Shown: piece after piece, positions 2,084 through 58,283 of the stretch | Position numbering within the stretch: the first letter of the stretch is position 1 | Layout: every line of letters starts with the position of its first letter | IMG/VR virus record: IMGVR_UViG_3300046003_007892 | Location: 62,001 to 126,000 of that record | Strand: one strand, 5' to 3' | Length of the DNA: 64,000 nt | Notes under the pieces: generated by a model | What the model saw: the letters and a program-made list of their open reading frames with translations, nothing else | Database searches by the model: none | What the model was told of the DNA's origin: nothing | Position numbers and translations under genes: made by a program

Positions 2084-2175
2084 TGGTAGCAGACCAGGGA
2101 ATCGAGCCCTGCACGAACCGAGTATCTCTCGGCTGCTAAAGGTGTATAAATCCTTCGTGGTGCCTCACGCCTGCT
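2084..2175 (-). tRNA. atypical tRNA-like RNA, anticodon UAU (Ile), reduced D-arm, long variable arm
   Basis: acceptor AGCAGGC/GUCUGCU, A73, CCA; T-arm CAGGG-CUCGAUU-CCCUG; AC arm AAGG-A-UUUAUAC-A-CCUU; V-arm AGCCGAG/CUCGGUU. Confidence 0.6.
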
Positions 2176-2184
2176 AAATATTGG

Positions 2185-2715
2185 GTGTTTTATACTGTAT
2201 ACCGGATAACAAATCTGACGAACGGTAAGTTTTATGTGGGTGCTCACCAGACTGAGAACCTACGAGACTCATATATGGGAAGTGGTAGAGCCATCAAAGA
2301 AGCTATTCGTAAGCACGGTATAGATAGTTTCTCCAAAGAAATACTCCATGTGTTTGAAACTTCTGAAGAAATGTTCGCCATGGAGCGGTCCATTATTCAA
2401 GAGTGTCTGGGAGATCGAAACAACTACAATATGGGCGTCGGAGGAGCGGGAGGTTTCACATCTGAGATCGCTCGGCGAGGTGCACTAGCGCAAGCTGAGA
2501 AATACGACCTCGCCTCTAAGTCCGAATGGGGGCGAAAAGGAATTGCCGCGTTCCACGCAAACCCAGAGAATATCTCCAAACTTTCCGAGAATGGAAGGAA
2601 GGGTGGCCGGATGAACAAGGGAAAGAAAAAATCCCCCGAGCACATCCGCGCAATCCAGGAAGCCAAGCTTCGGAAAAAGAATGGTGCGCCCGGCCAGACT
2701 CGAACTGACAACTGA
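2185..2715 (+). CDS. GIY-YIG homing endonuclease (Seg-like)
   Basis: VYRITN..NGKFYVG, YMGSG, E and YN..GG motifs; TAAATA-N4-GTG; antisense inside tRNA operon. Confidence 0.9.
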   Translation: MFYTVYRITNLTNGKFYVGAHQTENLRDSYMGSGRAIKEAIRKHGIDSFSKEILHVFETSEEMFAMERSIIQECLGDRNNYNMGVGGAGGFTSEIARRGALAQAEKYDLASKSEWGRKGIAAFHANPENISKLSENGRKGGRMNKGKKKSPEHIRAIQEAKLRKKNGAPGQTRTDN

Positions 2716-2756
2716 TCACTTATGAGGTGATGGTTCTACCATTGAACTACAGGCGC
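2682..2756 (-). tRNA. tRNA CAU, probably Ile2 (lysidine)
   Basis: cloverleaf, loop CUCAUAA, CCA; G1-C72 (not initiator); C4-G69 and C5-G68 as in TilS substrates. Confidence 0.85.
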
Positions 2757-2757
2757 A

Positions 2758-2833
2758 TGGCATATCCGGCAGGGCTCGAACCTGCAACCGACGACTTAGA
2801 AGGTCGTTGCTCTTCCAATTGAGCTACGGATAC
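2758..2833 (-). tRNA. tRNA-Arg(UCU)
   Basis: canonical cloverleaf, loop CUUCUAA, CCA. Confidence 0.92.
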
Positions 2834-2885
2834 ACGGGAGGGTTCGGGGAGCGGCAGACGCGCGCGGACGAACTCCGGGAAGGAG

Positions 2886-2921
2886 TTATATTCGTCTCAG
2901 CCTGTTGGAGCGCGTCTTCAT
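2886..2921 (-). CDS. candidate leader peptide MKTRSNRLRRI of tRNA operon 1
   Basis: ATG 5 nt after TATAAATA; ends AGG CTG AGA CGA ATA TAA. Confidence 0.55.
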   Translation of the reverse strand: MKTRSNRLRRI

Positions 2922-2926
2922 AGGAG

Positions 2927-2957
2927 TATTTATACGTCAGGTCACCAGATAGGTCAA
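2927..2957 (-). promoter_or_regulatory. tRNA operon 1 promoter (sigma70-type plus late TATAAATA)
   Basis: TTGACC-N17-TATAAATA. Confidence 0.75.
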
Positions 2958-3409
2958 TAACCGCTTTTGATCATATCTTCCGAATCCGCATCAAGCTGGA
3001 TGAGGACGACGAACTTTTCGAAGGCGGCATGGTTGCCCACCAGTGTGATTTCGAGGGGACGGCTGGGACCGGCTACGTCAACGCCGAAGCAGAACTCTTC
3101 GTGCACGATCATGTATCGGTAGTTGCCGCCGCTGACGACCTCGTTGAACCGACGCGGCAGAGGCATGTAGTTTTTATGGTCGGGGTCGGTGATGATCTGT
3201 TGATCGATTCGATAGTAGGTATGGTCGGCTACATGCCCGACGTTAACTATCACTGAGCTTCGAATGCTTGGGCACTGCCCTGGCTCGAAAACCACGGGGG
3301 TTACCGCGTAGAACATCTTCGCCCACGCTCGACTGTCCAAGAGGGCGTTGTGCCAGCAATCCTCGTAGGCCTTGTCGATCAAGGCGATGAAGGGCATGGG
3401 GTCGATCAT
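2954..3409 (-). CDS. hypothetical protein
   Basis: 151 aa; C-terminus resembles next gene. Confidence 0.7.
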   Translation of the reverse strand: MIDPMPFIALIDKAYEDCWHNALLDSRAWAKMFYAVTPVVFEPGQCPSIRSSVIVNVGHVADHTYYRIDQQIITDPDHKNYMPLPRRFNEVVSGGNYRYMIVHEEFCFGVDVAGPSRPLEITLVGNHAAFEKFVVLIQLDADSEDMIKSGY

Positions 3410-3735
3410 TGCACGAGTCGCAAGTAGGCGATGAACTTCAGGTAGGCGTCGTAGTCGCCCTTCACGACCAAGCCATAGGAGGGCTCGGGTTTTGGGGGAA
3501 CGCTCGGCATATCGTTCGGCTCAAACAGGACGCGGAACTCAGGATGGACGATGTTCCATTTCATCCGCCCAGCGCGTCCAGCCAGACCACGGTCGCGCTC
3601 AAAGCCGAGTTGCATCCGCACGCCGCTGAACTCGAACGCCCACGGAGAACTGTTGAACTGGGTTCCGCGATAGCCTGAGATGTCGAGGAGAGTCGAGAAA
3701 TCCTCCTCCAGCATGTAGTGAAAGGTCTGCTTCAT
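3406..3735 (-). CDS. hypothetical protein
   Basis: start at MKQTFHY via ATGA coupling. Confidence 0.7.
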   Translation of the reverse strand: MKQTFHYMLEEDFSTLLDISGYRGTQFNSSPWAFEFSGVRMQLGFERDRGLAGRAGRMKWNIVHPEFRVLFEPNDMPSVPPKPEPSYGLVVKGDYDAYLKFIAYLRLVQ

Positions 3736-4442
3736 GCCGCCTCGGAAACCGCCGAGACTTCCAGCATGCGGAGCATGATCTCCAGCGTGTAGCGGGCGTC
3801 GTTGCCTCCGCAGTGCGGGCGCGGGCACTCGACGCCGAAATGCTCGGCCAGGGTCGAGAGCTTGGACACCTTGCCGGTCAGGGTTCGACCCCACCACAGG
3901 GTATCGAAGACGGGCCGGACGGGCAACTCGACGCCATGGCTGCGCAGGTGATCGAAGTCGTTCTTCAACGCCTGACCGCCGTAGAACTCGACCTGTTCGC
4001 AGACGCGGACGAACCTCGCATAGGCTTCGTCGCGGGGAAGGAACTCGGTGCGGCCGAAATCGAACACGCCGTGGGCGCGCGGCGAGAGGCGCAAGTTGTA
4101 GGACTGCGTGACGCCGTTGCCGTAGAGGGTGTACCCGATCTCGTGCGTGACCTGAGTGTCGCGGTGCCATTCACAGTCGAAGACCAGGATGGATTTCCCC
4201 GCCGCCAACGCGTCGCGGAGTTCGCTCATCTCGGTGATGCTGCGCTGGTTCTGATTTCGGGCACCGCGTGCATTTCCCTTGCGGCTCTGGTGGCGGTTGA
4301 CCCGCCGCATCAGATTGTTGAGCCGCTCGACCCTTTCGTGGAAGTCATCGACATGCACCATGACGCCGGGCGCAGGGAAGCGTTCAGCGAACAGGTCCGC
4401 CGTTTTCTTCCGCAGGCTTTCTCTCAGAAGTCTCAGGTCCAT
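3732..4442 (-). CDS. DEDDh 3'-5' exonuclease
   Basis: ILVFDCEW (ExoI), NDFD (ExoII), HCGGNDA (ExoIII). Confidence 0.8.
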   Translation of the reverse strand: MDLRLLRESLRKKTADLFAERFPAPGVMVHVDDFHERVERLNNLMRRVNRHQSRKGNARGARNQNQRSITEMSELRDALAAGKSILVFDCEWHRDTQVTHEIGYTLYGNGVTQSYNLRLSPRAHGVFDFGRTEFLPRDEAYARFVRVCEQVEFYGGQALKNDFDHLRSHGVELPVRPVFDTLWWGRTLTGKVSKLSTLAEHFGVECPRPHCGGNDARYTLEIMLRMLEVSAVSEAA

Positions 4443-4478: not shown

Positions 4479-5162
4479 CTAATGTTCCTCGAACGGCCCG
4501 ACGTGCGTTCGAACCGCTTGTGCATCGTAGACGTAGGCGAGATCGTCGTAGTGGGTCAGGTGCAGGACCATCATGTCAGCCGCCGAGGTGACGGCGATGA
4601 TGGCCTCGTCGCGCCGGGGTTCTCCCCCACCATGATACATGTGCGACAGGCGAATCTCGGACACCATCTTGGTCATCGTATGCGGTATGGCGGCCAGGAG
4701 GTCTTCGATGTTCTCGGGACGGAGCACCACCAAATGCGTGAAGGGAAAGCCGCGCAGGATGAGCTTCTTGGCCGTCTGGCAGACGTGGAAGGGCGCCGCC
4801 TCGGCTGCGAAGTTCAAGAAAGGCGAGGGGTCCACCGGGGTGACATCGACTTCCCCTTTGAGGGTCGTCGTGACCTCGAACTCCTCCATGACCAACGTGG
4901 GCACGGGGGTCGTGCTCTGGAGGAGATGGGCGAGGATGAATTCCGCCCAGACCTGTTCGGTAGCCGCCCTCGTGCTCCAGCGGCGGCCACTGGCGTTGAA
5001 CTCAGGCACGATGTCGCGAGTTTCGTTGCAACGACTCAGGTAAAGTCCGGTCGCGGTGTCGCGGAGACGGAACTCCGACCGCTTGCCCACGGGGTGGGAC
5101 TTGAGCGAGGGCCGCCTCTTGCGGGGTTTGTAGTCGCAATCATCGATGGAGATGGCCTTCAT
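4479..5162 (-). CDS. hypothetical protein
   Basis: 227 aa. Confidence 0.7.
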   Translation of the reverse strand: MKAISIDDCDYKPRKRRPSLKSHPVGKRSEFRLRDTATGLYLSRCNETRDIVPEFNASGRRWSTRAATEQVWAEFILAHLLQSTTPVPTLVMEEFEVTTTLKGEVDVTPVDPSPFLNFAAEAAPFHVCQTAKKLILRGFPFTHLVVLRPENIEDLLAAIPHTMTKMVSEIRLSHMYHGGGEPRRDEAIIAVTSAADMMVLHLTHYDDLAYVYDAQAVRTHVGPFEEH

Positions 5163-5470
5163 GCGGCTTTGGCGAAGCCCTCGGCTTCAATTTTCAGAAC
5201 GGCGGCGAGGACTCCACCTTCGCAGGCGGTCCAGTTCTTCCGGTCAGGACAGGCCGCGAGATTGGAGCGACGGACTTTTTGGAGAAGCCGGTTGGCGATC
5301 TCCTGGCGGACCCAGAGATCGTCGGGCTCGAACCCAGCCCGGCCGATGGCCGACGCGACCGTCATGTTATCGAAGGTGCCGTTCATGACGGCTAGACCGG
5401 CCCGTATCGCATCTTTCCCGCACGTCTTTCCATCGACGGTGATCGCGGTGATGAAGATGCGTTGCGACAT
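5159..5470 (-). CDS. hypothetical protein
   Basis: start MSQRIF with GGGAG SD. Confidence 0.6.
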   Translation of the reverse strand: MSQRIFITAITVDGKTCGKDAIRAGLAVMNGTFDNMTVASAIGRAGFEPDDLWVRQEIANRLLQKVRRSNLAACPDRKNWTACEGGVLAAVLKIEAEGFAKAA

Positions 5471-5520: not shown

Positions 5521-5880
5521 TCAACCAGGATTGAGCATCATCCACAGCATCACGTCACGACAGAACGCGGTATCGGTGGTGCCCAAATCGAAATCAAAGA
5601 TGTGGGCTTCGGTGAAAGTCCGGCGCCCATTCACGAAGGTGGTCTCGAAGGTGATCTTCCAAATGCTGTCGTCGAACCTGTCGCGGCTGACTTCTTTCGG
5701 CATCCCCGTGAGTCTAAAGGACGATCTTCCGTCCGCATGCCAGAGACGCACTAGAGCTATCTTGCGGTCCACGAAGATGATGCTGTCTTGGGCGAAGAGA
5801 GCCCCTTTGGTCAGGAGACCTTTGGTGCCGAGCCACAAGGTCACCACGGACTTTTCGGTATCGGTCAACTCCCTGATCAT
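5521..5880 (-). CDS. hypothetical protein
   Basis: 119 aa. Confidence 0.65.
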   Translation of the reverse strand: MIRELTDTEKSVVTLWLGTKGLLTKGALFAQDSIIFVDRKIALVRLWHADGRSSFRLTGMPKEVSRDRFDDSIWKITFETTFVNGRRTFTEAHIFDFDLGTTDTAFCRDVMLWMMLNPG

Positions 5881-20443: not shown

Positions 20444-20977
20444 ATGAATATTGAACTACTCCAAGAATATATCGAGCAGGGTCTGTCCAGCTATCAGATC
20501 GCGGCCAAGACCAATAAGGCGGCGACGACCGTCCGATACTGGATAAAGAAGCACGGCCTCAGCATTTCAAAGCCTGATAAGCCGGATAACCATTGCGCCC
20601 GGTGCGACACCGTCAAGACCAGAGACGACTTCTACCAATACGACACCAAGCGGAGGACGACCTACTGTAAGCCCTGCATGGCGTCGTGGATGAAAGATCG
20701 CTGTCGGAAGCTCAAGGCCCTGGCGGTGGAATATGCGGGAGGCTGCTGCAAGGGCTGCGGCTACGACAAATATCAGGGTGCTCTAGACTTCCATCACCGG
20801 GACCCGGCGCAGAAGGATTTCTCCATTGCTGCCAACATGCGGCGCGGAGACCTCAGCGAGACCATGAAGGCCGAGATCGATAAGTGTGTTCTCCTTTGTG
20901 CTAACTGCCACCGCGAGGCTCACGGCGGACTACGGGATTGGAAGATGGAGGGCCCTGAGAGAATCGAACTCTCGTGA
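20444..20977 (+). CDS. HNH homing endonuclease with HTH and Zn-finger
   Basis: ALDFHHRDP, LLCANCHREAH; TAAATA-N6-ATG; antisense inside tRNA operon. Confidence 0.9.
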   Translation: MNIELLQEYIEQGLSSYQIAAKTNKAATTVRYWIKKHGLSISKPDKPDNHCARCDTVKTRDDFYQYDTKRRTTYCKPCMASWMKDRCRKLKALAVEYAGGCCKGCGYDKYQGALDFHHRDPAQKDFSIAANMRRGDLSETMKAEIDKCVLLCANCHREAHGGLRDWKMEGPERIELS

Positions 20978-21019
20978 AGTGATTAAAAGTCACCTATTCT
21001 GCCATTGAATTAAGGGCCC
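20946..21019 (-). tRNA. tRNA-Lys(UUU), canonical length
   Basis: loop CUUUUAA, U73, CCA. Confidence 0.9.
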
Positions 21020-21022
21020 ATC

Positions 21023-21116
21023 TGGAGAACGCGGTGGGACTCGAACCCACGGGGTCAGGCTTGCACCTGTTACGGGCTTAAAAGGCCCGGCCTCTCGCCA
21101 CTGAGGTGACGCGTCC
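21023..21116 (-). tRNA. tRNA-Lys(UUU) with long variable arm
   Basis: 94 nt; CGGGC-CUUUUAA-GCCCG; V-arm CAGGU-GCAA-GCCUG; U73, CCA. Confidence 0.8.
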
Positions 21117-21130
21117 GTTCAGAAGAAACT

Positions 21131-21217
21131 TGGAGGATTGGATGGGACTCGAACCCATGATGAGCTTACGCTAGCGGGGTAAGAACCCGCGCCTCTCGCC
21201 GCTGAGGTGACCAATCC
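21131..21217 (-). tRNA. tRNA-Lys(CUU) with long variable arm
   Basis: 87 nt; GCGGG-UUCUUAC-CCCGC; V-arm AGC-GUAA-GCU; U73, CCA. Confidence 0.8.
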
Positions 21218-21235
21218 GAGAAGTGGTGTGGGTGG

Positions 21236-21311
21236 TGGTGAACGCGCTCGGGTTCGAACCGAGGACCAACAGATTAAGAGTCTGTCGCTCTACCAACTGA
21301 GCTACGCGTCC
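21236..21311 (-). tRNA. tRNA-Lys(CUU), canonical
   Basis: loop CUCUUAA, A73, CCA. Confidence 0.93.
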
Positions 21312-21386: not shown

Positions 21387-21428
21387 TTACCTGGATTTCC
21401 GTTTCGAGAAGGTGCGAAGCGAGGTCAT
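21387..21428 (-). CDS. candidate leader peptide MTSLRTFSKRKSR of tRNA operon 2
   Basis: ATG 8 nt after TAAATA; ends AAA CGG AAA TCC AGG TAA. Confidence 0.55.
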   Translation of the reverse strand: MTSLRTFSKRKSR

Positions 21429-21436
21429 GATGTTTG

Positions 21437-21466
21437 TATTTAGCCTGAGGGCTGCGTTTCTGTCAA
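21437..21466 (-). promoter_or_regulatory. tRNA operon 2 promoter
   Basis: TTGACA-N16-GCTAAATA. Confidence 0.75.
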
Positions 21467-50665: not shown

Positions 50666-51040
50666 TCAGCTAGAAATTTTGATTTCTACTTCTTTCGGAA
50701 AGTTGATCTCGTCTTCGTCGAAAGCCAGTCTGATTTTCGCAGCTTGTTTGTCTGAGAACGTTGCCACCGAGCCGTCAGCGTTGTAGCCGAAGTTGATCGG
50801 GAAGCACTGAATAGCCCGCAAGCGGGCTTTGACCTCTTTGAACTCAGAAGCGTTGAAAACGCCGGGGAACTCAACGATGGTGATGCCAGGACGAACGCGA
50901 GGGGAGAACTCATTCCACCCCGTCAGAACCTGGAAGGAACTCCGTGTGCGACGACGAACAGGCGCGTTCGACCGAGCGATCACGCGCTCGTGCATGCGCC
51001 GGTCAAAGCTGGCCTGCTTGCTGCTCCACGTCGATTTCAT
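50666..51040 (-). CDS. hypothetical protein
   Basis: MKSTWSS, ATGA coupling. Confidence 0.6.
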   Translation of the reverse strand: MKSTWSSKQASFDRRMHERVIARSNAPVRRRTRSSFQVLTGWNEFSPRVRPGITIVEFPGVFNASEFKEVKARLRAIQCFPINFGYNADGSVATFSDKQAAKIRLAFDEDEINFPKEVEIKISS

Positions 51041-52233
51041 TCCGTGACCTCGTTCCAACCCCAGCGGACGCCGCCCCAAAGGTGGCGCACGAGATCAACG
51101 CGAGTAGCCGAACCCAGATGCTTGGCCACGACCCGGTGTCCAACCTCGACCGGGTCTTGCCCGTCGAAGATCGAGAACATCATCGTCCTGTCGAGTCCGT
51201 CCACGTCCTTGATCGCCAGCGCGAGGTCCCGCTTGGAATATCCGGCATACTGCTCGGCGACGCGTTTGGCCAGAGCCTCCATGTAGGTCGAGATGCCTTT
51301 CTGGACCGCGTCCGCGTAATCGACCACGCGCTGACGGTCGTCTGCCGCCAGCAGGGGCAGGGTGTCGTCGATCTTGTCCTCAAGGATGAGGGCCAAGACG
51401 TTCTTCTCGCTTGAGAGGTTGTCCTTGGCGGCATGCATGATGCAATATTCGTCGGCCTTGACCTTCAGCTTGTGGCCGTTCTGGAACGCGATCACCCAGC
51501 CCTCGGTCTCGACGAGGTCGCGGGTTTCGGTGACGAAATCGTTTACGTCGTGCAGGCTCCCAGGACGTCGCTGGACAAGCTCAACGCGGTGGAAGTCGCA
51601 CAGGTCGCCAAGATACCCGAAGTCGCTGTAGACCCCCGTATCGTTGTCGCGGATGGCCAGCAAGACCAGACGGTCTACCGGGTGGTCGATGACGATGCGC
51701 TGTTGGCGCGAACACCATTCGAAGATCGGGGTTTTGTTTTCGCTCACGCATTCTCGCGCAAGCCCCTCGTAGCGGAGATTGCGTTCAACGAACCGATCAA
51801 CCTGGAGGGCAATATCGGTGAGACCCATTTTGGTCGCCCACCGCATTCCACCAGACGTCGGCAATGGAGTGATCATGCTACCGTCCATCTTTTCTAGGAT
51901 GTCACAGTTTTCGCTCCAGTCAACATTTTGTGTAAGGACTTCCGGGCGTTCGTTGAGGTTGAAGAACTTGTGGAACTTCCGGTTCACTACTTTGCCAGTC
52001 GCCTTTGAGAAAGTCAGGCCACGGCACTCGCGCAGAATCGCATACTCGCGATCTTCCTCGCGGTCGCCAGAGAACGCCGGGAAAGTTCCAGAGAAACTGA
52101 TCAGGTAGTTGAAGAGGACAAAGTCGCCACGGTCGGCTTCAATGAAGACCTGGGTGCCCAGCCGGGCGTTGTGGCGCGCAACTACTCCGCTGACCTCAGC
52201 CAGGGACATGTCATGGGGAAATTCGTAAAACAT
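51037..52233 (-). CDS. T4 Rnl1-type RNA ligase
   Basis: ECRGL, HKFFN, EKMDGS, EGWV, KVK. Confidence 0.9.
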   Translation of the reverse strand: MFYEFPHDMSLAEVSGVVARHNARLGTQVFIEADRGDFVLFNYLISFSGTFPAFSGDREEDREYAILRECRGLTFSKATGKVVNRKFHKFFNLNERPEVLTQNVDWSENCDILEKMDGSMITPLPTSGGMRWATKMGLTDIALQVDRFVERNLRYEGLARECVSENKTPIFEWCSRQQRIVIDHPVDRLVLLAIRDNDTGVYSDFGYLGDLCDFHRVELVQRRPGSLHDVNDFVTETRDLVETEGWVIAFQNGHKLKVKADEYCIMHAAKDNLSSEKNVLALILEDKIDDTLPLLAADDRQRVVDYADAVQKGISTYMEALAKRVAEQYAGYSKRDLALAIKDVDGLDRTMMFSIFDGQDPVEVGHRVVAKHLGSATRVDLVRHLWGGVRWGWNEVTE

Positions 52234-54349: not shown

Positions 54350-55909
54350 GTGGGACGTAATCCGCTAACGAAGACCTTCGACCACCAAACCGAAGAGACT
54401 TCCATCTATCAGGCCTGGGAAACCAGTGGCGCCTTCAAGCCATCAGGCAAAGGGGAACCCTATTTCCTCCCCATGCCCCCGCCGAACATCACCGGCATTC
54501 TGCATATGGGCCACGCCCTGTTTGCAACCCTTCAGGACATCAGCACGCGATTCAACCGGATGCGGGGGCGCAATACCCTCTGGCTGCCGGGGACCGATCA
54601 CGCCGGGTTGGCCACGCAAGCCAAGCTGGACGAACTCATGATCGCTCAGGGGCTCGACCCGCAGGGACCGGAGTTCGACGCGTTCGCTGCCGACTACAAG
54701 GCCAACCTGAAGAGCACCATCACGGGTCAGCTTCGCCGTTGTGGCGCGTCTGCTGACTGGTCCAGAGAGACCTTCACGCTCGACGACGATTACAGCGCAG
54801 CCGTCATCGCCGCCATGGAGAAATGCCATGAGGCCGGGATGCTCTACCAGCGGGACGGCCAGTGGTGGCTCGACATGGAACCATTGGCGGCTGAACTCCT
54901 GTCCGAGATGGACGCGGGGAGCCTGGAGATCATTCCCTCGGGCGGTGAAGGCACGCTGCGCAACTTCCTGACCAAGATCGAGCCGTGGTGCATCAGCCGT
55001 CAAATCCGCTGGGGTCATCGTTTGCCGATCTGGAAACGGAACGGCATTCGCTCCGGCATCCAGCGCATCAACGAGTTCACGATCAGCGCGACCTGTCCGG
55101 GAGACCCCCAGGATTGGACGCAGGAAGAAGGATGTCTGGATACGTGGTTCTCTTCGGCCCTCTGGCCGTTCGCCACGCTGGGTTGGCCCAAAGACACTCC
55201 CGACATGCGGACCTTCTACCCGGCCGCCATGATCGAGACCGCCGACGACATCCTGTTCTTCTGGTGCGCCCGCATGCTCATGATGGGGCTCCTCCTGACT
55301 GACCAGATGGCCTTCAAGACAATCTTCCTGCACGGTCTCATCCGGGACAAGGACGGGCGCAAGATGGCCAAGTCCATCGGCAACGGCATCGACCCCCTAG
55401 ATATCATCGAGAAGTTCGGCTGCGACGCCATGCGGTTCGCTCTGGCCGAAGATGCCACGCCGGGCCAGGACATGCGGATGTGGGATGAAAAGTTCCAAGC
55501 CGCGAAGGGACTGCGGACCAAAATCTGGAACGCATCCCGGTATGCGATCTCGCACTGGGACCGCATCGGCCACGGTCGTCTCGCATTCCCGTCCCAGCAT
55601 CCCGATGACATCGCCATCCGGGCCCGGCTAGACGAAACCATCCAGGAAATGACTGCCATGCTAGAGGGGCTTCGCTACCACGAGGCCGCCTTCACCATTC
55701 GGCAGTTCATCTTCAATGACCTGTGCGGGACCTACATCGAGCAGACCAAGTCTCGGCTCTACGATGAGAATGACATGGCGGCCAACGCGACCCTCATGGA
55801 AACCCTCCATCAGACCCTACGTCTCCTCCACCCGTTCATGCCTTACGTCACGGAGAGGATTCGGGCAGCCTACTCGCCAGACCCCTTGATCACGACCGAC
55901 TGGGTGTAG
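54350..55909 (+). CDS. valS: valyl-tRNA synthetase, minimal (no CP1 editing domain)
   Basis: PPPNITGILHMGH, WCISRQ, LDTWFSS, KMAKS; 519 aa. Confidence 0.85.
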   Translation: MGRNPLTKTFDHQTEETSIYQAWETSGAFKPSGKGEPYFLPMPPPNITGILHMGHALFATLQDISTRFNRMRGRNTLWLPGTDHAGLATQAKLDELMIAQGLDPQGPEFDAFAADYKANLKSTITGQLRRCGASADWSRETFTLDDDYSAAVIAAMEKCHEAGMLYQRDGQWWLDMEPLAAELLSEMDAGSLEIIPSGGEGTLRNFLTKIEPWCISRQIRWGHRLPIWKRNGIRSGIQRINEFTISATCPGDPQDWTQEEGCLDTWFSSALWPFATLGWPKDTPDMRTFYPAAMIETADDILFFWCARMLMMGLLLTDQMAFKTIFLHGLIRDKDGRKMAKSIGNGIDPLDIIEKFGCDAMRFALAEDATPGQDMRMWDEKFQAAKGLRTKIWNASRYAISHWDRIGHGRLAFPSQHPDDIAIRARLDETIQEMTAMLEGLRYHEAAFTIRQFIFNDLCGTYIEQTKSRLYDENDMAANATLMETLHQTLRLLHPFMPYVTERIRAAYSPDPLITTDWV

Positions 55910-56432: not shown

Positions 56433-56719
56433 CGGAGATGCTCCATCACGGTCGCGAGTTCAGGGAGGATGCGGGCCTCGGCGGCATCGTTTTCGGCCCA
56501 GGTCGTCGGATAGGAAACGTATTCAGATAGGCGAATCCGCCATCCGTTTCCTGAAACATTTTTCGGTTCCACGGTGAGGCGCGGTGCGAACAGGTTTGTG
56601 AGACGAGCGGGCGGGCCGTAGCCGGACCATATGTCGTGTGCGCCCTCAAAGCGGGGGGCGTAGTGGGAACAGATGGCCTCTACAGCGGCCACCTCCTCGG
56701 GTGTGGACGGGCGTATCAT
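56429..56719 (-). CDS. hypothetical protein
   Basis: 96 aa, coupled. Confidence 0.6.
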   Translation of the reverse strand: MIRPSTPEEVAAVEAICSHYAPRFEGAHDIWSGYGPPARLTNLFAPRLTVEPKNVSGNGWRIRLSEYVSYPTTWAENDAAEARILPELATVMEHLR

Positions 56720-58068
56720 GCGCTCCTCCAGACCGTTCCCTCGGGCTTGTCTTCTAGTACGACACCCATGCTTTCGATCTTGGCCCTCAAGCGGTCAGCC
56801 TCGGCCCAGTCCTTATTGGCCCGCGCCGAGTTGCGTTCTTGAATGAGTTCCCAAATGTCGAACATCGGCCGGGTGTCGGTCTTGCGTTGACGCCAGCGGG
56901 TCGGGTCGGACTCCAACAAGCCCATCATGTTGGCCGACCGGAGAAGCTTATCGACGCTCTCTTCGCCGCGCGAAACCCGACTGGCCAGATCGTGCAGGGC
57001 CGCCAGTGCACCGGGGGTGTTGAGATCGTCCTGAAGGGCCCCCAGAACGGATTCATCGACGTCCGGGGGTCCGGCGACCTTTCCGTTCAGAACAGCCGTG
57101 TAGAGGCCGTTCAGAGCCTTCTCCGCCTCTTCCATGCGGGCTTCGGTATAGTCGATGGCCGCTCTATAGTGGGTGGAGAGCAGGAAGTAGCGCACGACCT
57201 CGCCGTCGAGATCGCTTTTCATGAGTTCAGCCAAGGTGACGAAGTTGCCCTGGCTCTTCGACATCTTCTTGCCGTCTACGGTCAGCATGCCGTTGTGGAG
57301 CCAGTAGTTGGCCAGCGGCTCACCGTGCGCGCATTCCGACTGCGCGATCTCGTTCTCGTGGTGGGGGAATATGAGATCGGAGCCGCCGCCGTGAATGTCG
57401 ATGGTCGGGCCGAATATGCGGGCGATCATGGCCGAGCATTCGATATGCCAGCCCGGACGTCCCATTCCCCACGGCGAGGTCCAGACAGGCTCACCCGGTT
57501 CCTTGCCGGGTTTCCACAAGACGAAGTCGGCGGGGTCGCGCTTGTATGAGCCGGGCTCGACGCGGGCCCCGGCTTGGAGGCCGAGAAGGTTTTGTTTGGA
57601 GAGCTTGCCGTGTTGGGCGTGGCTCTTCACCGAGAAGAGAACGTGCCCATCCGCCACGTAGGCGTGACCCTTGTCGATCAGCGTGGTGATCATCTCGATC
57701 ATGACGCCGATATGCGTGGTCGCTCGGGGGTTCAAAGTTGGGTCGAGGTTCCCCAGCATCCGCATCACCGAATGGTAGACCTGGATGGTCTCATTGGTGA
57801 GTTCACTGATGCTGATGTTGCGCTCTTTTGCGCGCTCGATGATCTTGTCGTCGATGTCCGTGTAGTTGCGCGCGAAGAAGACGCTGTCCTCCCCATAGGT
57901 GTGGCGAAGGAGACGGAACAGGATATCGAACGCGGCGGCGGGGCGACCATTTCCCAGGTGGGGGTGGTCATAAACCGTGGGGCCGCACTGGTACACGGTC
58001 ACCCGGTTGGGGTGCAGGGGAGTGAACTCGCGTTTCTCTCCCGTCATCGTGTCGTGCAGCTTGATCAT
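56716..58068 (-). CDS. cysS: cysteinyl-tRNA synthetase
   Basis: YQCGPTVY, HLGN, GRPGWHIECS, FPHHENE, KMSKS, anticodon-binding helix. Confidence 0.95.
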   Translation of the reverse strand: MIKLHDTMTGEKREFTPLHPNRVTVYQCGPTVYDHPHLGNGRPAAAFDILFRLLRHTYGEDSVFFARNYTDIDDKIIERAKERNISISELTNETIQVYHSVMRMLGNLDPTLNPRATTHIGVMIEMITTLIDKGHAYVADGHVLFSVKSHAQHGKLSKQNLLGLQAGARVEPGSYKRDPADFVLWKPGKEPGEPVWTSPWGMGRPGWHIECSAMIARIFGPTIDIHGGGSDLIFPHHENEIAQSECAHGEPLANYWLHNGMLTVDGKKMSKSQGNFVTLAELMKSDLDGEVVRYFLLSTHYRAAIDYTEARMEEAEKALNGLYTAVLNGKVAGPPDVDESVLGALQDDLNTPGALAALHDLASRVSRGEESVDKLLRSANMMGLLESDPTRWRQRKTDTRPMFDIWELIQERNSARANKDWAEADRLRAKIESMGVVLEDKPEGTVWRSA

Positions 58069-58248
58069 CTGATCTCCAAAATACGGGTGGCCCCGGACAA
58101 CTCGACCACCCGCCGCATACTTTAATACACCCGTTGCCGCGTTGCCGCGCAGCATCCCGACCCAGCATTGAGCCGAAGACCCGGCGACGGGGCTCATTTT
58201 CACGTCCCCGTACCTTCCCACTATCATGGGAACTATTTTTTGCAAAGC

Positions 58249-58283
58249 AAAAGGGCCGGACTGGTTTCCCAATCCGACCCTTT
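58249..58283 (-). terminator. intrinsic terminator
   Basis: GGGTCGGATTGG-GAAA-CCAGTCCGGCCC-TTTT. Confidence 0.8.

Follow-up and report, generated by a model that had tools for sequence, protein, structure and literature searches.

Why would a phage tRNA operon begin with a tiny gene whose codons call for the very tRNAs that it precedes? This question arose from a sequence-only reading of a 64,000-nt stretch of phage DNA (hereafter the window; bases 62,001-126,000 of the parent contig JGI Ga0485178_000005, IMG/VR record IMGVR_UViG_3300046003_007892). That reading described a probably leaderless 11-codon ORF ahead of the first tRNA operon and inferred that ribosome stalling on its final codons allows the phage to sense the shortage or cleavage of specific host tRNAs and to switch on matching replacements. 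The observation itself is confirmed, as every sequence feature listed in that reading is present. The interpretation is only partly supported: the idea of a leaderless leader peptide whose codons match the operon's own tRNAs and which works by ribosome stalling receives strong support at the level of the phage lineage, whereas the case is weaker for the first operon itself.

Anatomy of the first tRNA operon

The features of operon 1 are encoded on the minus strand. A -35 hexamer, TTGACC (2957..2952), overlaps the TGA stop of an upstream 151-aa orphan ORF and is followed by a 17-nt spacer, the -10 element TATAAATA (2934..2927), CTCCT, and an ATG (2921..2919), which sits at the predicted transcription start. 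A consensus sigma-70 scan does not list this promoter, because the sixth base of its -10 hexamer, TATAAA, is A rather than the final T. The ORF (2921..2886) reads ATG AAG ACG CGC TCC AAC AGG CTG AGA CGA ATA TAA and encodes MKTRSNRLRRI. Its candidate sensing codons are AGG, AGA and AUA, and AGA (0.45%), AGG (0.54%) and AUA (0.31%) are among the rarest codons in the genes of the phage. The proposed 5-bp hairpin, ACTCC (2886..2882) with GGAGT (2876..2872), starts at the last A of the stop codon, while AGACGCGC (2917..2910) pairs with GCGCGTCT (2863..2856) and GACGAA (2896..2891) pairs with TTCGTC (2872..2867). However, the 5-bp hairpin (2886..2872) is only the tip of a longer helix, since together these pairings make one long imperfect hairpin (2917..2856; -25.8 kcal/mol, z -1.7), in which the ORF forms the 5' arm and which still forms when tRNA-Arg is attached. 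A C-rich tail (2855..2834), single-stranded in this fold, runs up to the first tRNA. Similar tails precede operon 2 and the tRNA(CUA) gene.

Two tRNAs, tRNA-Arg(UCU) (2833..2758), with its CCA encoded, and, one base later, tRNA(CAU) (2756..2682), are called by both ARAGORN and Rfam. The latter was read as probably Ile2. It is not an initiator (G1-C72), but it may be an elongator Met rather than Ile2, and a comparison with E. coli genomes returned no match with which to separate the two. A PP-loop gene to the left of the window was considered as a lysidine synthase, but it is an NAD synthase by Pfam. A TTCTTTTTCC run (2681..2672) directly follows the CCA of tRNA(CAU) and, by inference, may mark the end of the two-tRNA transcription unit. 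On the plus strand, a GIY-YIG (SegE-like) homing endonuclease gene (2185..2715) has its last 34 nt antisense to tRNA(CAU) and separates the two tRNAs from the third element, the UAU tRNA-like RNA (2175..2084, minus strand) that was proposed to read the last codon of the leader. This 92-nt element is not called by ARAGORN, nor by the Rfam tRNA model even at E<=10. It folds as a cloverleaf-like RNA with a 7-bp acceptor stem including one G-U, a 5-bp T arm, a long variable arm and a CCA end, although its D arm is only 3 bp and UAU lies in a 9-nt anticodon loop, or a 7-nt loop with an A-A mismatch. Long-arm tRNA(UAU) genes do occur in other phages.

The codon match of this ORF is modest when taken alone. 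Only 2 of 10 codons, AGG and AGA, are surely cognate (p 0.047), rising to 3 of 10 if AUA counts, either because the CAU tRNA is Ile2 or because the UAU element works. CGC and CGA are not read by a UCU anticodon. It is therefore conceivable that the ORF is incidental, in which case the region would simply be a promoter and a structured 5' leader of a pre-tRNA transcript, such as a stabilizing hairpin or a processing site, to be removed by RNase P. The hairpin starts 4 nt from the predicted 5' end, as in 5' stabilizer hairpins, and the purine-rich base composition of the ORF by itself predicts about 16% AGR/AAR/AUA codons by our own estimate. We consider this explanation doubtful, as the geometry described below is shared with eight clear leaders and with real leaderless genes, short ORFs at such sites within the window occur only before tRNAs, and two independent operons in the window exhibit it.

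Leaderless genes and a second tRNA operon in the window

Leaderless expression is normal in this phage. Five other promoters in the window (5915, 22433, 36192, 41896 and 49043) place an ATG 5-6 nt after the -10 of genes of 119-268 aa, and many leaderless mRNAs are translated in Caulobacter and other alphaproteobacteria. The ATG of operon 1 lies 5 nt after TATAAATA, and its TTGAC-to-ATG distance (36 nt) is the same as in real leaderless genes and clear leaders. If the 17-nt-spaced -10 hexamer is used as the reference, however, the ATG lies 7 nt (operon 1) and 9 nt (operon 2) downstream, against 5-6 nt in the real genes. Among all TTGAC-N30-33-ATG sites in the window with a credible -10, the only short ORFs are the two in front of tRNA operons.

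The second of these, operon 2, has the same layout. Its control region (21466..21387, minus strand) comprises TTGACA, 16 nt, GCTAAATA, 8 nt (in hexamer terms a 17-nt spacer, CTAAAT, then 9 nt) and an ATG at 21428, which opens the 13-codon ORF MTSLRTFSKRKSR, ending TCG AAA CGG AAA TCC AGG TAA. A hairpin starts right after the stop codon and the ORF is again the 5' arm of a long hairpin (-34.4 kcal/mol, z -1.75), followed by a C-rich tail down to 21312. The four genes downstream (21311..20946) are all tRNA-Lys (CUU, CUU, UUU, UUU), the middle two having long variable arms and U73, and the ORF contains two AAA codons (p 0.1). The two leaders are only marginally similar to each other in sequence (p 0.03-0.07).

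Neither hairpin can be read as an intrinsic terminator, as both lack a U-run, and no hairpin with a U-run lies between the operon 1 ORF and tRNA-Arg (2885..2834). A plus-strand reading of the operon 1 hairpin as a terminator for the endonuclease gene was rejected for the same reason. This raises the possibility that operons 1 and 2 are decayed attenuators, in which the terminator was lost, perhaps when the tRNA and homing-endonuclease cassette moved, such that the ORF, hairpin and C-rich tail would be relics and the operon would be transcribed constitutively. In support of this, the ORFs (11 and 13 codons) are far shorter than working leaders (20-45), homing endonuclease genes abut both operons, the region has lower G+C than its surroundings, and, by eye, the C-rich tail resembles the 5' strand and loop of the terminator in the largest tRNA operon of the phage, with the 3' strand not matching. 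Conversely, both operons retain an ATG at the start site, an open frame that ends exactly at the foot of the apical hairpin, and cognate rare codons, which relics under no selection would be expected to lose. A leader that lacks a clear terminator, yet has four tandem Leu codons, is also found in a relative (see below). Decay is thus possible but unlikely.

Comparative data were not forthcoming from the operon 1 locus. The 151-aa ORF has no relative among 5.8 billion proteins, the neighboring genes have no PHROG or Pfam families, and every public contig found with the locus is identical, including at least ten loci from other public assemblies that are 100% identical over the region. Apparent variant-strain contigs from Logan proved identical in DNA and differed only in their gene calls. 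A search of IMG/VR with the tRNA-Arg anticodon arm returned 60 loci, none of them a close homolog, and hits to the C-rich tail motif in IMG/VR outside this phage lay inside a protein gene or far from tRNAs and were chance matches. We therefore walked along the parent contig and looked for relatives through its unusual long-arm tRNA-Lys.

Leaders elsewhere in the phage and in its relatives

The largest tRNA operon of the same phage is located about 18 kb to the left of the window (L032, minus strand), as found in a scan that left out about 105 kb of the 240-kb contig (1-37,752 and 172,767-240,363). Here, TTGACT, GCTAAATA and 6 nt precede an ATG (5916) that opens a 31-codon leaderless ORF, MSKNYIMFVNNNVVWNIPGAAFVHGRDGVSI, made almost wholly of Tyr, Ile, Met, Phe, Val, Asn and Trp codons. 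A canonical hairpin-plus-U-run terminator follows (fold z -5.4), and then tRNAs for exactly those amino acids (Trp, Tyr, Phe, Val, Ile, Ile, Val, Met and Asn). Of its 30 codons, 18 are read by the downstream tRNAs, against 8.2 expected (p 2e-4). A second promoter (P0), just upstream of tRNA-Trp, has no ORF but does have a similar GACGAA-type purine-rich leader, so composition alone could produce AGA and CGA in operon 1, which favors the incidental reading.

The D-arm of the long-arm tRNA-Lys hit one other IMG/VR contig, of 279 kb (L111), which holds 24 called tRNAs and four leaders, each with TTGACA 36-38 nt before its ATG. The first, MITKTTTPMTMKPTKP..., is rich in Thr, Lys, Pro and Met, has a canonical terminator and stands before three Pro, Met, three Thr and Lys tRNAs. 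The second has four different Leu codons in tandem (TTA TTG CTA CTT) before five tRNA-Leu genes, and it is this leader that lacks a clear terminator. In the third, 25 of 33 codons are for His, Ala or Ser before His, three Ala and four Ser tRNAs (p 3e-13), with a terminator that begins at the stop codon (fold z -7.8). The fourth, MTYMIIFREREALSGRDTFAA, with E, E and D, stands before tRNA-Glu and tRNA-Asp. The tRNAs of L111 resemble those of Caulobacter phage phiCbK, and the long-arm tRNA-Lys(CUU) of the window is 84-86% identical to those of phiCbK and L111. phiCbK itself, under accession NC_019405, has three such leaders, each followed by a terminator that was already annotated by its authors. 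The largest tRNA operon of the present phage and eight leaders in relatives show ORFs built from codons cognate to the downstream tRNAs. TTGAC lies 36 +/- 2 nt before the ATG at all related leaders, and a scan for TTGAC 34-38 nt before an ATG, a short ORF (11-45 codons) and tRNA genes within about 330 nt recovers operons 1 and 2 together with the clear cases, although the enrichment of codons for the operon's anticodons is modest for these two.

One leader family, found in phiCbK before Phe, Val, Ile and Gln tRNAs (plus uncalled Tyr-, Asn- and Arg-like genes), is conserved in nine cultured phages of Caulobacter and Brevundimonas from several genera. In an alignment of seven members, the terminator (3:4) pairs in 91/91 cells, the antiterminator between the 3' half of the ORF and the 5' strand of the terminator (2:3) in 75/77, and the hairpin over the regulatory codons (1:2) in 57/63, each supported by three compensatory pairs. 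This is the classical trp-type arrangement, in which a ribosome stalled on the regulatory codons frees segment 2, which blocks the terminator. Covariation of leader codons with tRNA content among related phages had been named in advance as a check, and it was observed: the phiCbK leader MSKTYRQFVRQIQVVRNI corresponds to MSKNYIMFVNNNVVWNI in the present phage, where Arg and Gln residues are replaced by Ile, Met, Asn and Trp in an operon that lacks Gln and Arg tRNAs and has Trp and Met tRNAs. Residues matching the downstream tRNAs total 75, against a mean of 22 and a maximum of 55 in 1854 derangements of leaders and operons, while at the codon level, with wobble rules, Fisher p is about 1e-18 over eight leaders, to which operon 1 contributes p 0.047 and operon 2 contributes p 0.1. 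The ORFs were picked by their position relative to promoters rather than by composition, although the choice of test was still post hoc. As a whole, the pattern is more than chance.

The same data bear upon a switch of the opposite sign, in which a ribosome reaching the stop codon would mask the hairpin that begins there, as in pyrBI-type control, so that efficient translation permits read-through, stalling reduces it, and the operon is expressed only when decoding works. A hairpin does begin at or within the stop codon in operon 1, operon 2 and the His/Ala/Ser leader of L111, and in L111 that hairpin is the terminator itself. However, the covarying antiterminator of the conserved family fits the classical sign and positive feedback would be an odd design for supplying scarce tRNAs, making this the least likely of the alternatives.

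A proposed model for tRNA supply on demand

Based upon these features, the most likely explanation for 2957..2834 (probability about 0.6) is a host-type promoter plus a leaderless 11-codon leader ORF, belonging to a previously undescribed class of ribosome-sensing control regions that this phage lineage places in front of its tRNA operons. In this view, the leader of clear members is made of codons read by the operon's own tRNAs. When those charged tRNAs are scarce, the first ribosome would stall on the 5' arm of a leader hairpin, leaving the 3' arm free to pair with the upstream strand of a terminator, and RNA polymerase would read on into the tRNA genes. When the tRNAs are plentiful, the ribosome would run through, the terminator would form and transcription would stop, thus giving each tRNA operon negative feedback. 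For operon 1, what the sequence demonstrates is the promoter geometry, the ORF and the hairpin with the ORF as its 5' arm, whereas its translation, the increase of read-through upon stalling and the output step on which stalling acts are inferred, as is any sensing of host tRNA cleavage. Translation and regulation are likewise inferred from sequence for the remaining leaders. The output step could be Rho loading on the C-rich tail, which the freed 3' arm could hide, or it may have been lost. When the 5' arm is masked, GGAGTTCG of the 3' arm can pair with the tail (-14 kcal/mol), but this alternative is weak in operon 1 (z -1.6) and operon 2 has no such pairing.

Several comparisons with characterized systems can be made. 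Like the ribosome-mediated attenuators of amino acid biosynthesis operons (trpL, hisL, leuL, pheL, thrL and ilvL), the phiCbK-type family, with covariation, and the large operon of this phage, by fold, combine a short ORF rich in regulatory codons with a 1:2 hairpin overlapping the ORF and a 2:3 antiterminator that alternates with a 3:4 intrinsic terminator. They differ in that the controlled genes are tRNAs rather than enzymes, such that the sensed molecule is the product itself, one leader samples up to seven or eight amino acids at once to match a mixed operon, the ORFs are leaderless, the elements are phage-borne, and operon 1 lacks the terminator. Rho-dependent leader-peptide control (tnaC; mgtL and mgtP of Salmonella) is similar to operon 1 in having a short ORF followed by a C-rich, G-poor stretch without an intrinsic terminator, which alternative folding could expose or hide. 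The 52 nt after the stop are about 50% C and 23% G, yet roughly half is paired in the minimum-energy fold, the C-rich stretch is only about 22 nt when the hairpin is closed and about 43-52 nt when it is open, and operon 2 is not C-rich overall. Rho dependence is a conjecture. T-box riboswitches also read the state of a specific tRNA to control read-through of translation-related genes, but they bind uncharged tRNA directly and need no ribosome or ORF, and no T-box or other Rfam family matches these leaders. Lastly, phage tRNAs can act as counter-defense against anticodon nucleases (T4 with PrrC; T5 tRNA-Lys with PARIS; PMC10264068, PMC11464382, PMC11555353). The Lys and Arg tRNAs supplied here are classic nuclease targets and the phage also encodes a T4 Rnl1-type RNA ligase, but those studies concern the tRNAs themselves and, while they give a rationale for demand-driven expression, none describes a sensing leader that controls tRNA transcription. 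Full-text searches for leader peptides or attenuators before phage tRNA genes yielded no description, in agreement with the sequence-only reading, which knew of none, and the phiCbK genome paper (PMC3556154) has no occurrence of "attenuat" or "leader". The arrangement appears to be new.

A broader reading, which we regard as slightly more likely than not, is that phages of the phiCbK lineage and their uncultured jumbo relatives, including this one, run their tRNA operons under multi-amino-acid leader-peptide attenuators, each leader being a miniature test message written in the codons its operon serves. The phage would thereby measure the decoding capacity of the cell codon family by codon family, including the loss of host tRNAs to defense nucleases or host shut-off, and transcribe just the replacement tRNAs that are needed, with operons 1 and 2 being terminator-less, possibly Rho-dependent, versions for Arg/Ile and Lys. 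Why phages carry tRNAs has been argued for fifty years, whereas the regulation of those genes has hardly been studied. A leader written in the operon's own codons would mean that the tRNAs are made in response to a measured shortage, which favors supply on demand and counter-defense over constant codon supplementation, and it would extend classical attenuation to a case in which the sensed molecule and the regulated product are the same RNA and one leader reads many amino acids at once. Since the design is present in phiCbK, a cultured phage of the model bacterium Caulobacter crescentus, it is open to direct testing. The leaders also offer a new annotation aid, as their composition predicts which odd, uncalled tRNA-like genes follow them, one example being the Thr, Tyr, Asn and Arg tRNA-like genes missed in phiCbK.

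Each tRNA operon of the window is abutted by a homing-endonuclease-type gene on the opposite strand. The first of these genes (window 2185-2715, plus strand) is GIY-YIG/SegE-like, whereas the other (20444-20977, plus strand) encodes an HNH-like CANCHREAH motif, but yields no Pfam hit. The 3' end of each overlaps, in antisense, the last tRNA gene of its operon, an arrangement that recalls T4 segB in the T4 tRNA cluster.

Among the tRNA-Lys genes of the window, two (CUU, 87 nt, 21131-21217; UUU, 94 nt, 21023-21116; both minus strand) have long variable arms and discriminator U73, a shape that is normally reserved for Leu, Ser and Tyr tRNAs. Close homologues (69-89% identical) are annotated as tRNA-Lys in phiCbK and are present in the related metagenomic phage contig L111. 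The phage itself encodes a class II Asp/Lys/Asn-type synthetase and a CysRS. A further long-arm element, at window 2084-2175 (minus strand), is a cloverleaf-like RNA with a CCA end, a long variable arm, a 3-bp D stem and UAU in an enlarged anticodon loop. It is not called by tRNA finders, but long-arm tRNA(UAU) genes of 92-95 nt are called in two unrelated phage contigs (L062 and L085).

These two synthetases belong to a large translation and RNA-repair toolkit, encoded at window 51037-52233 (minus strand), 54350-55909 (plus strand) and 56716-58272 (minus strand) as well as in L021, L022 and L023, segments outside of the window. It also includes a T4 Rnl1-type RNA ligase, a class I synthetase (Ile/Leu/Val/Met type), IF3, ribosomal protein S21, peptidyl-tRNA hydrolase PTH2, and ClpS, ClpX and ClpP. 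The presence of a phage IF3 is notable because IF3 disfavours leaderless initiation. Many ordinary genes of this phage are leaderless, with the ATG 5-6 nt after the -10 element and no Shine-Dalgarno sequence (window 5915, 22433, 36192, 41896 and 49043).

Additional tRNA loci lie elsewhere in the same phage. In L022, there is a tRNA with anticodon CUA (amber-suppressor type; 5162-5237, minus strand) and a 91-nt tRNA-Cys(GCA) (3746-3836, minus strand). Upstream of the CUA tRNA lie a C-rich tail like that of operon 1 and a structured RNA of about 350 nt, which ends in a tRNA-like GGGCGCACCA plus a terminator and has no Rfam match. In L032, which carries a large tRNA cluster outside of the window, a group I intron (3154-3403, minus strand; Rfam RF00028, 50.1 bits) interrupts a tRNA gene just after a GTT (Asn) anticodon, and several further uncalled tRNA-like T-arm/acceptor elements lie between the nine called tRNAs of this cluster. 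Similarly, phiCbK (NC_019405) holds unannotated non-canonical tRNA-like genes with anticodons GGU and CGU (Thr), GUA (Tyr), GUU (Asn) and ACG (Arg) at 3312-3500, 4900-4990 and 5580-5780 of its segment L112. The genome paper states that no Thr or Tyr tRNAs are present. The leader peptides upstream contain exactly the amino acids of these tRNA-like genes.

Lastly, a second promoter-like site (TTGACT, 17 nt, TAGGTT; L032 5596-5511, minus strand) lies between the large operon's attenuator and tRNA-Trp. Its leader is purine-rich and has no ATG at the start. The operon may therefore have one attenuated and one unattenuated promoter.
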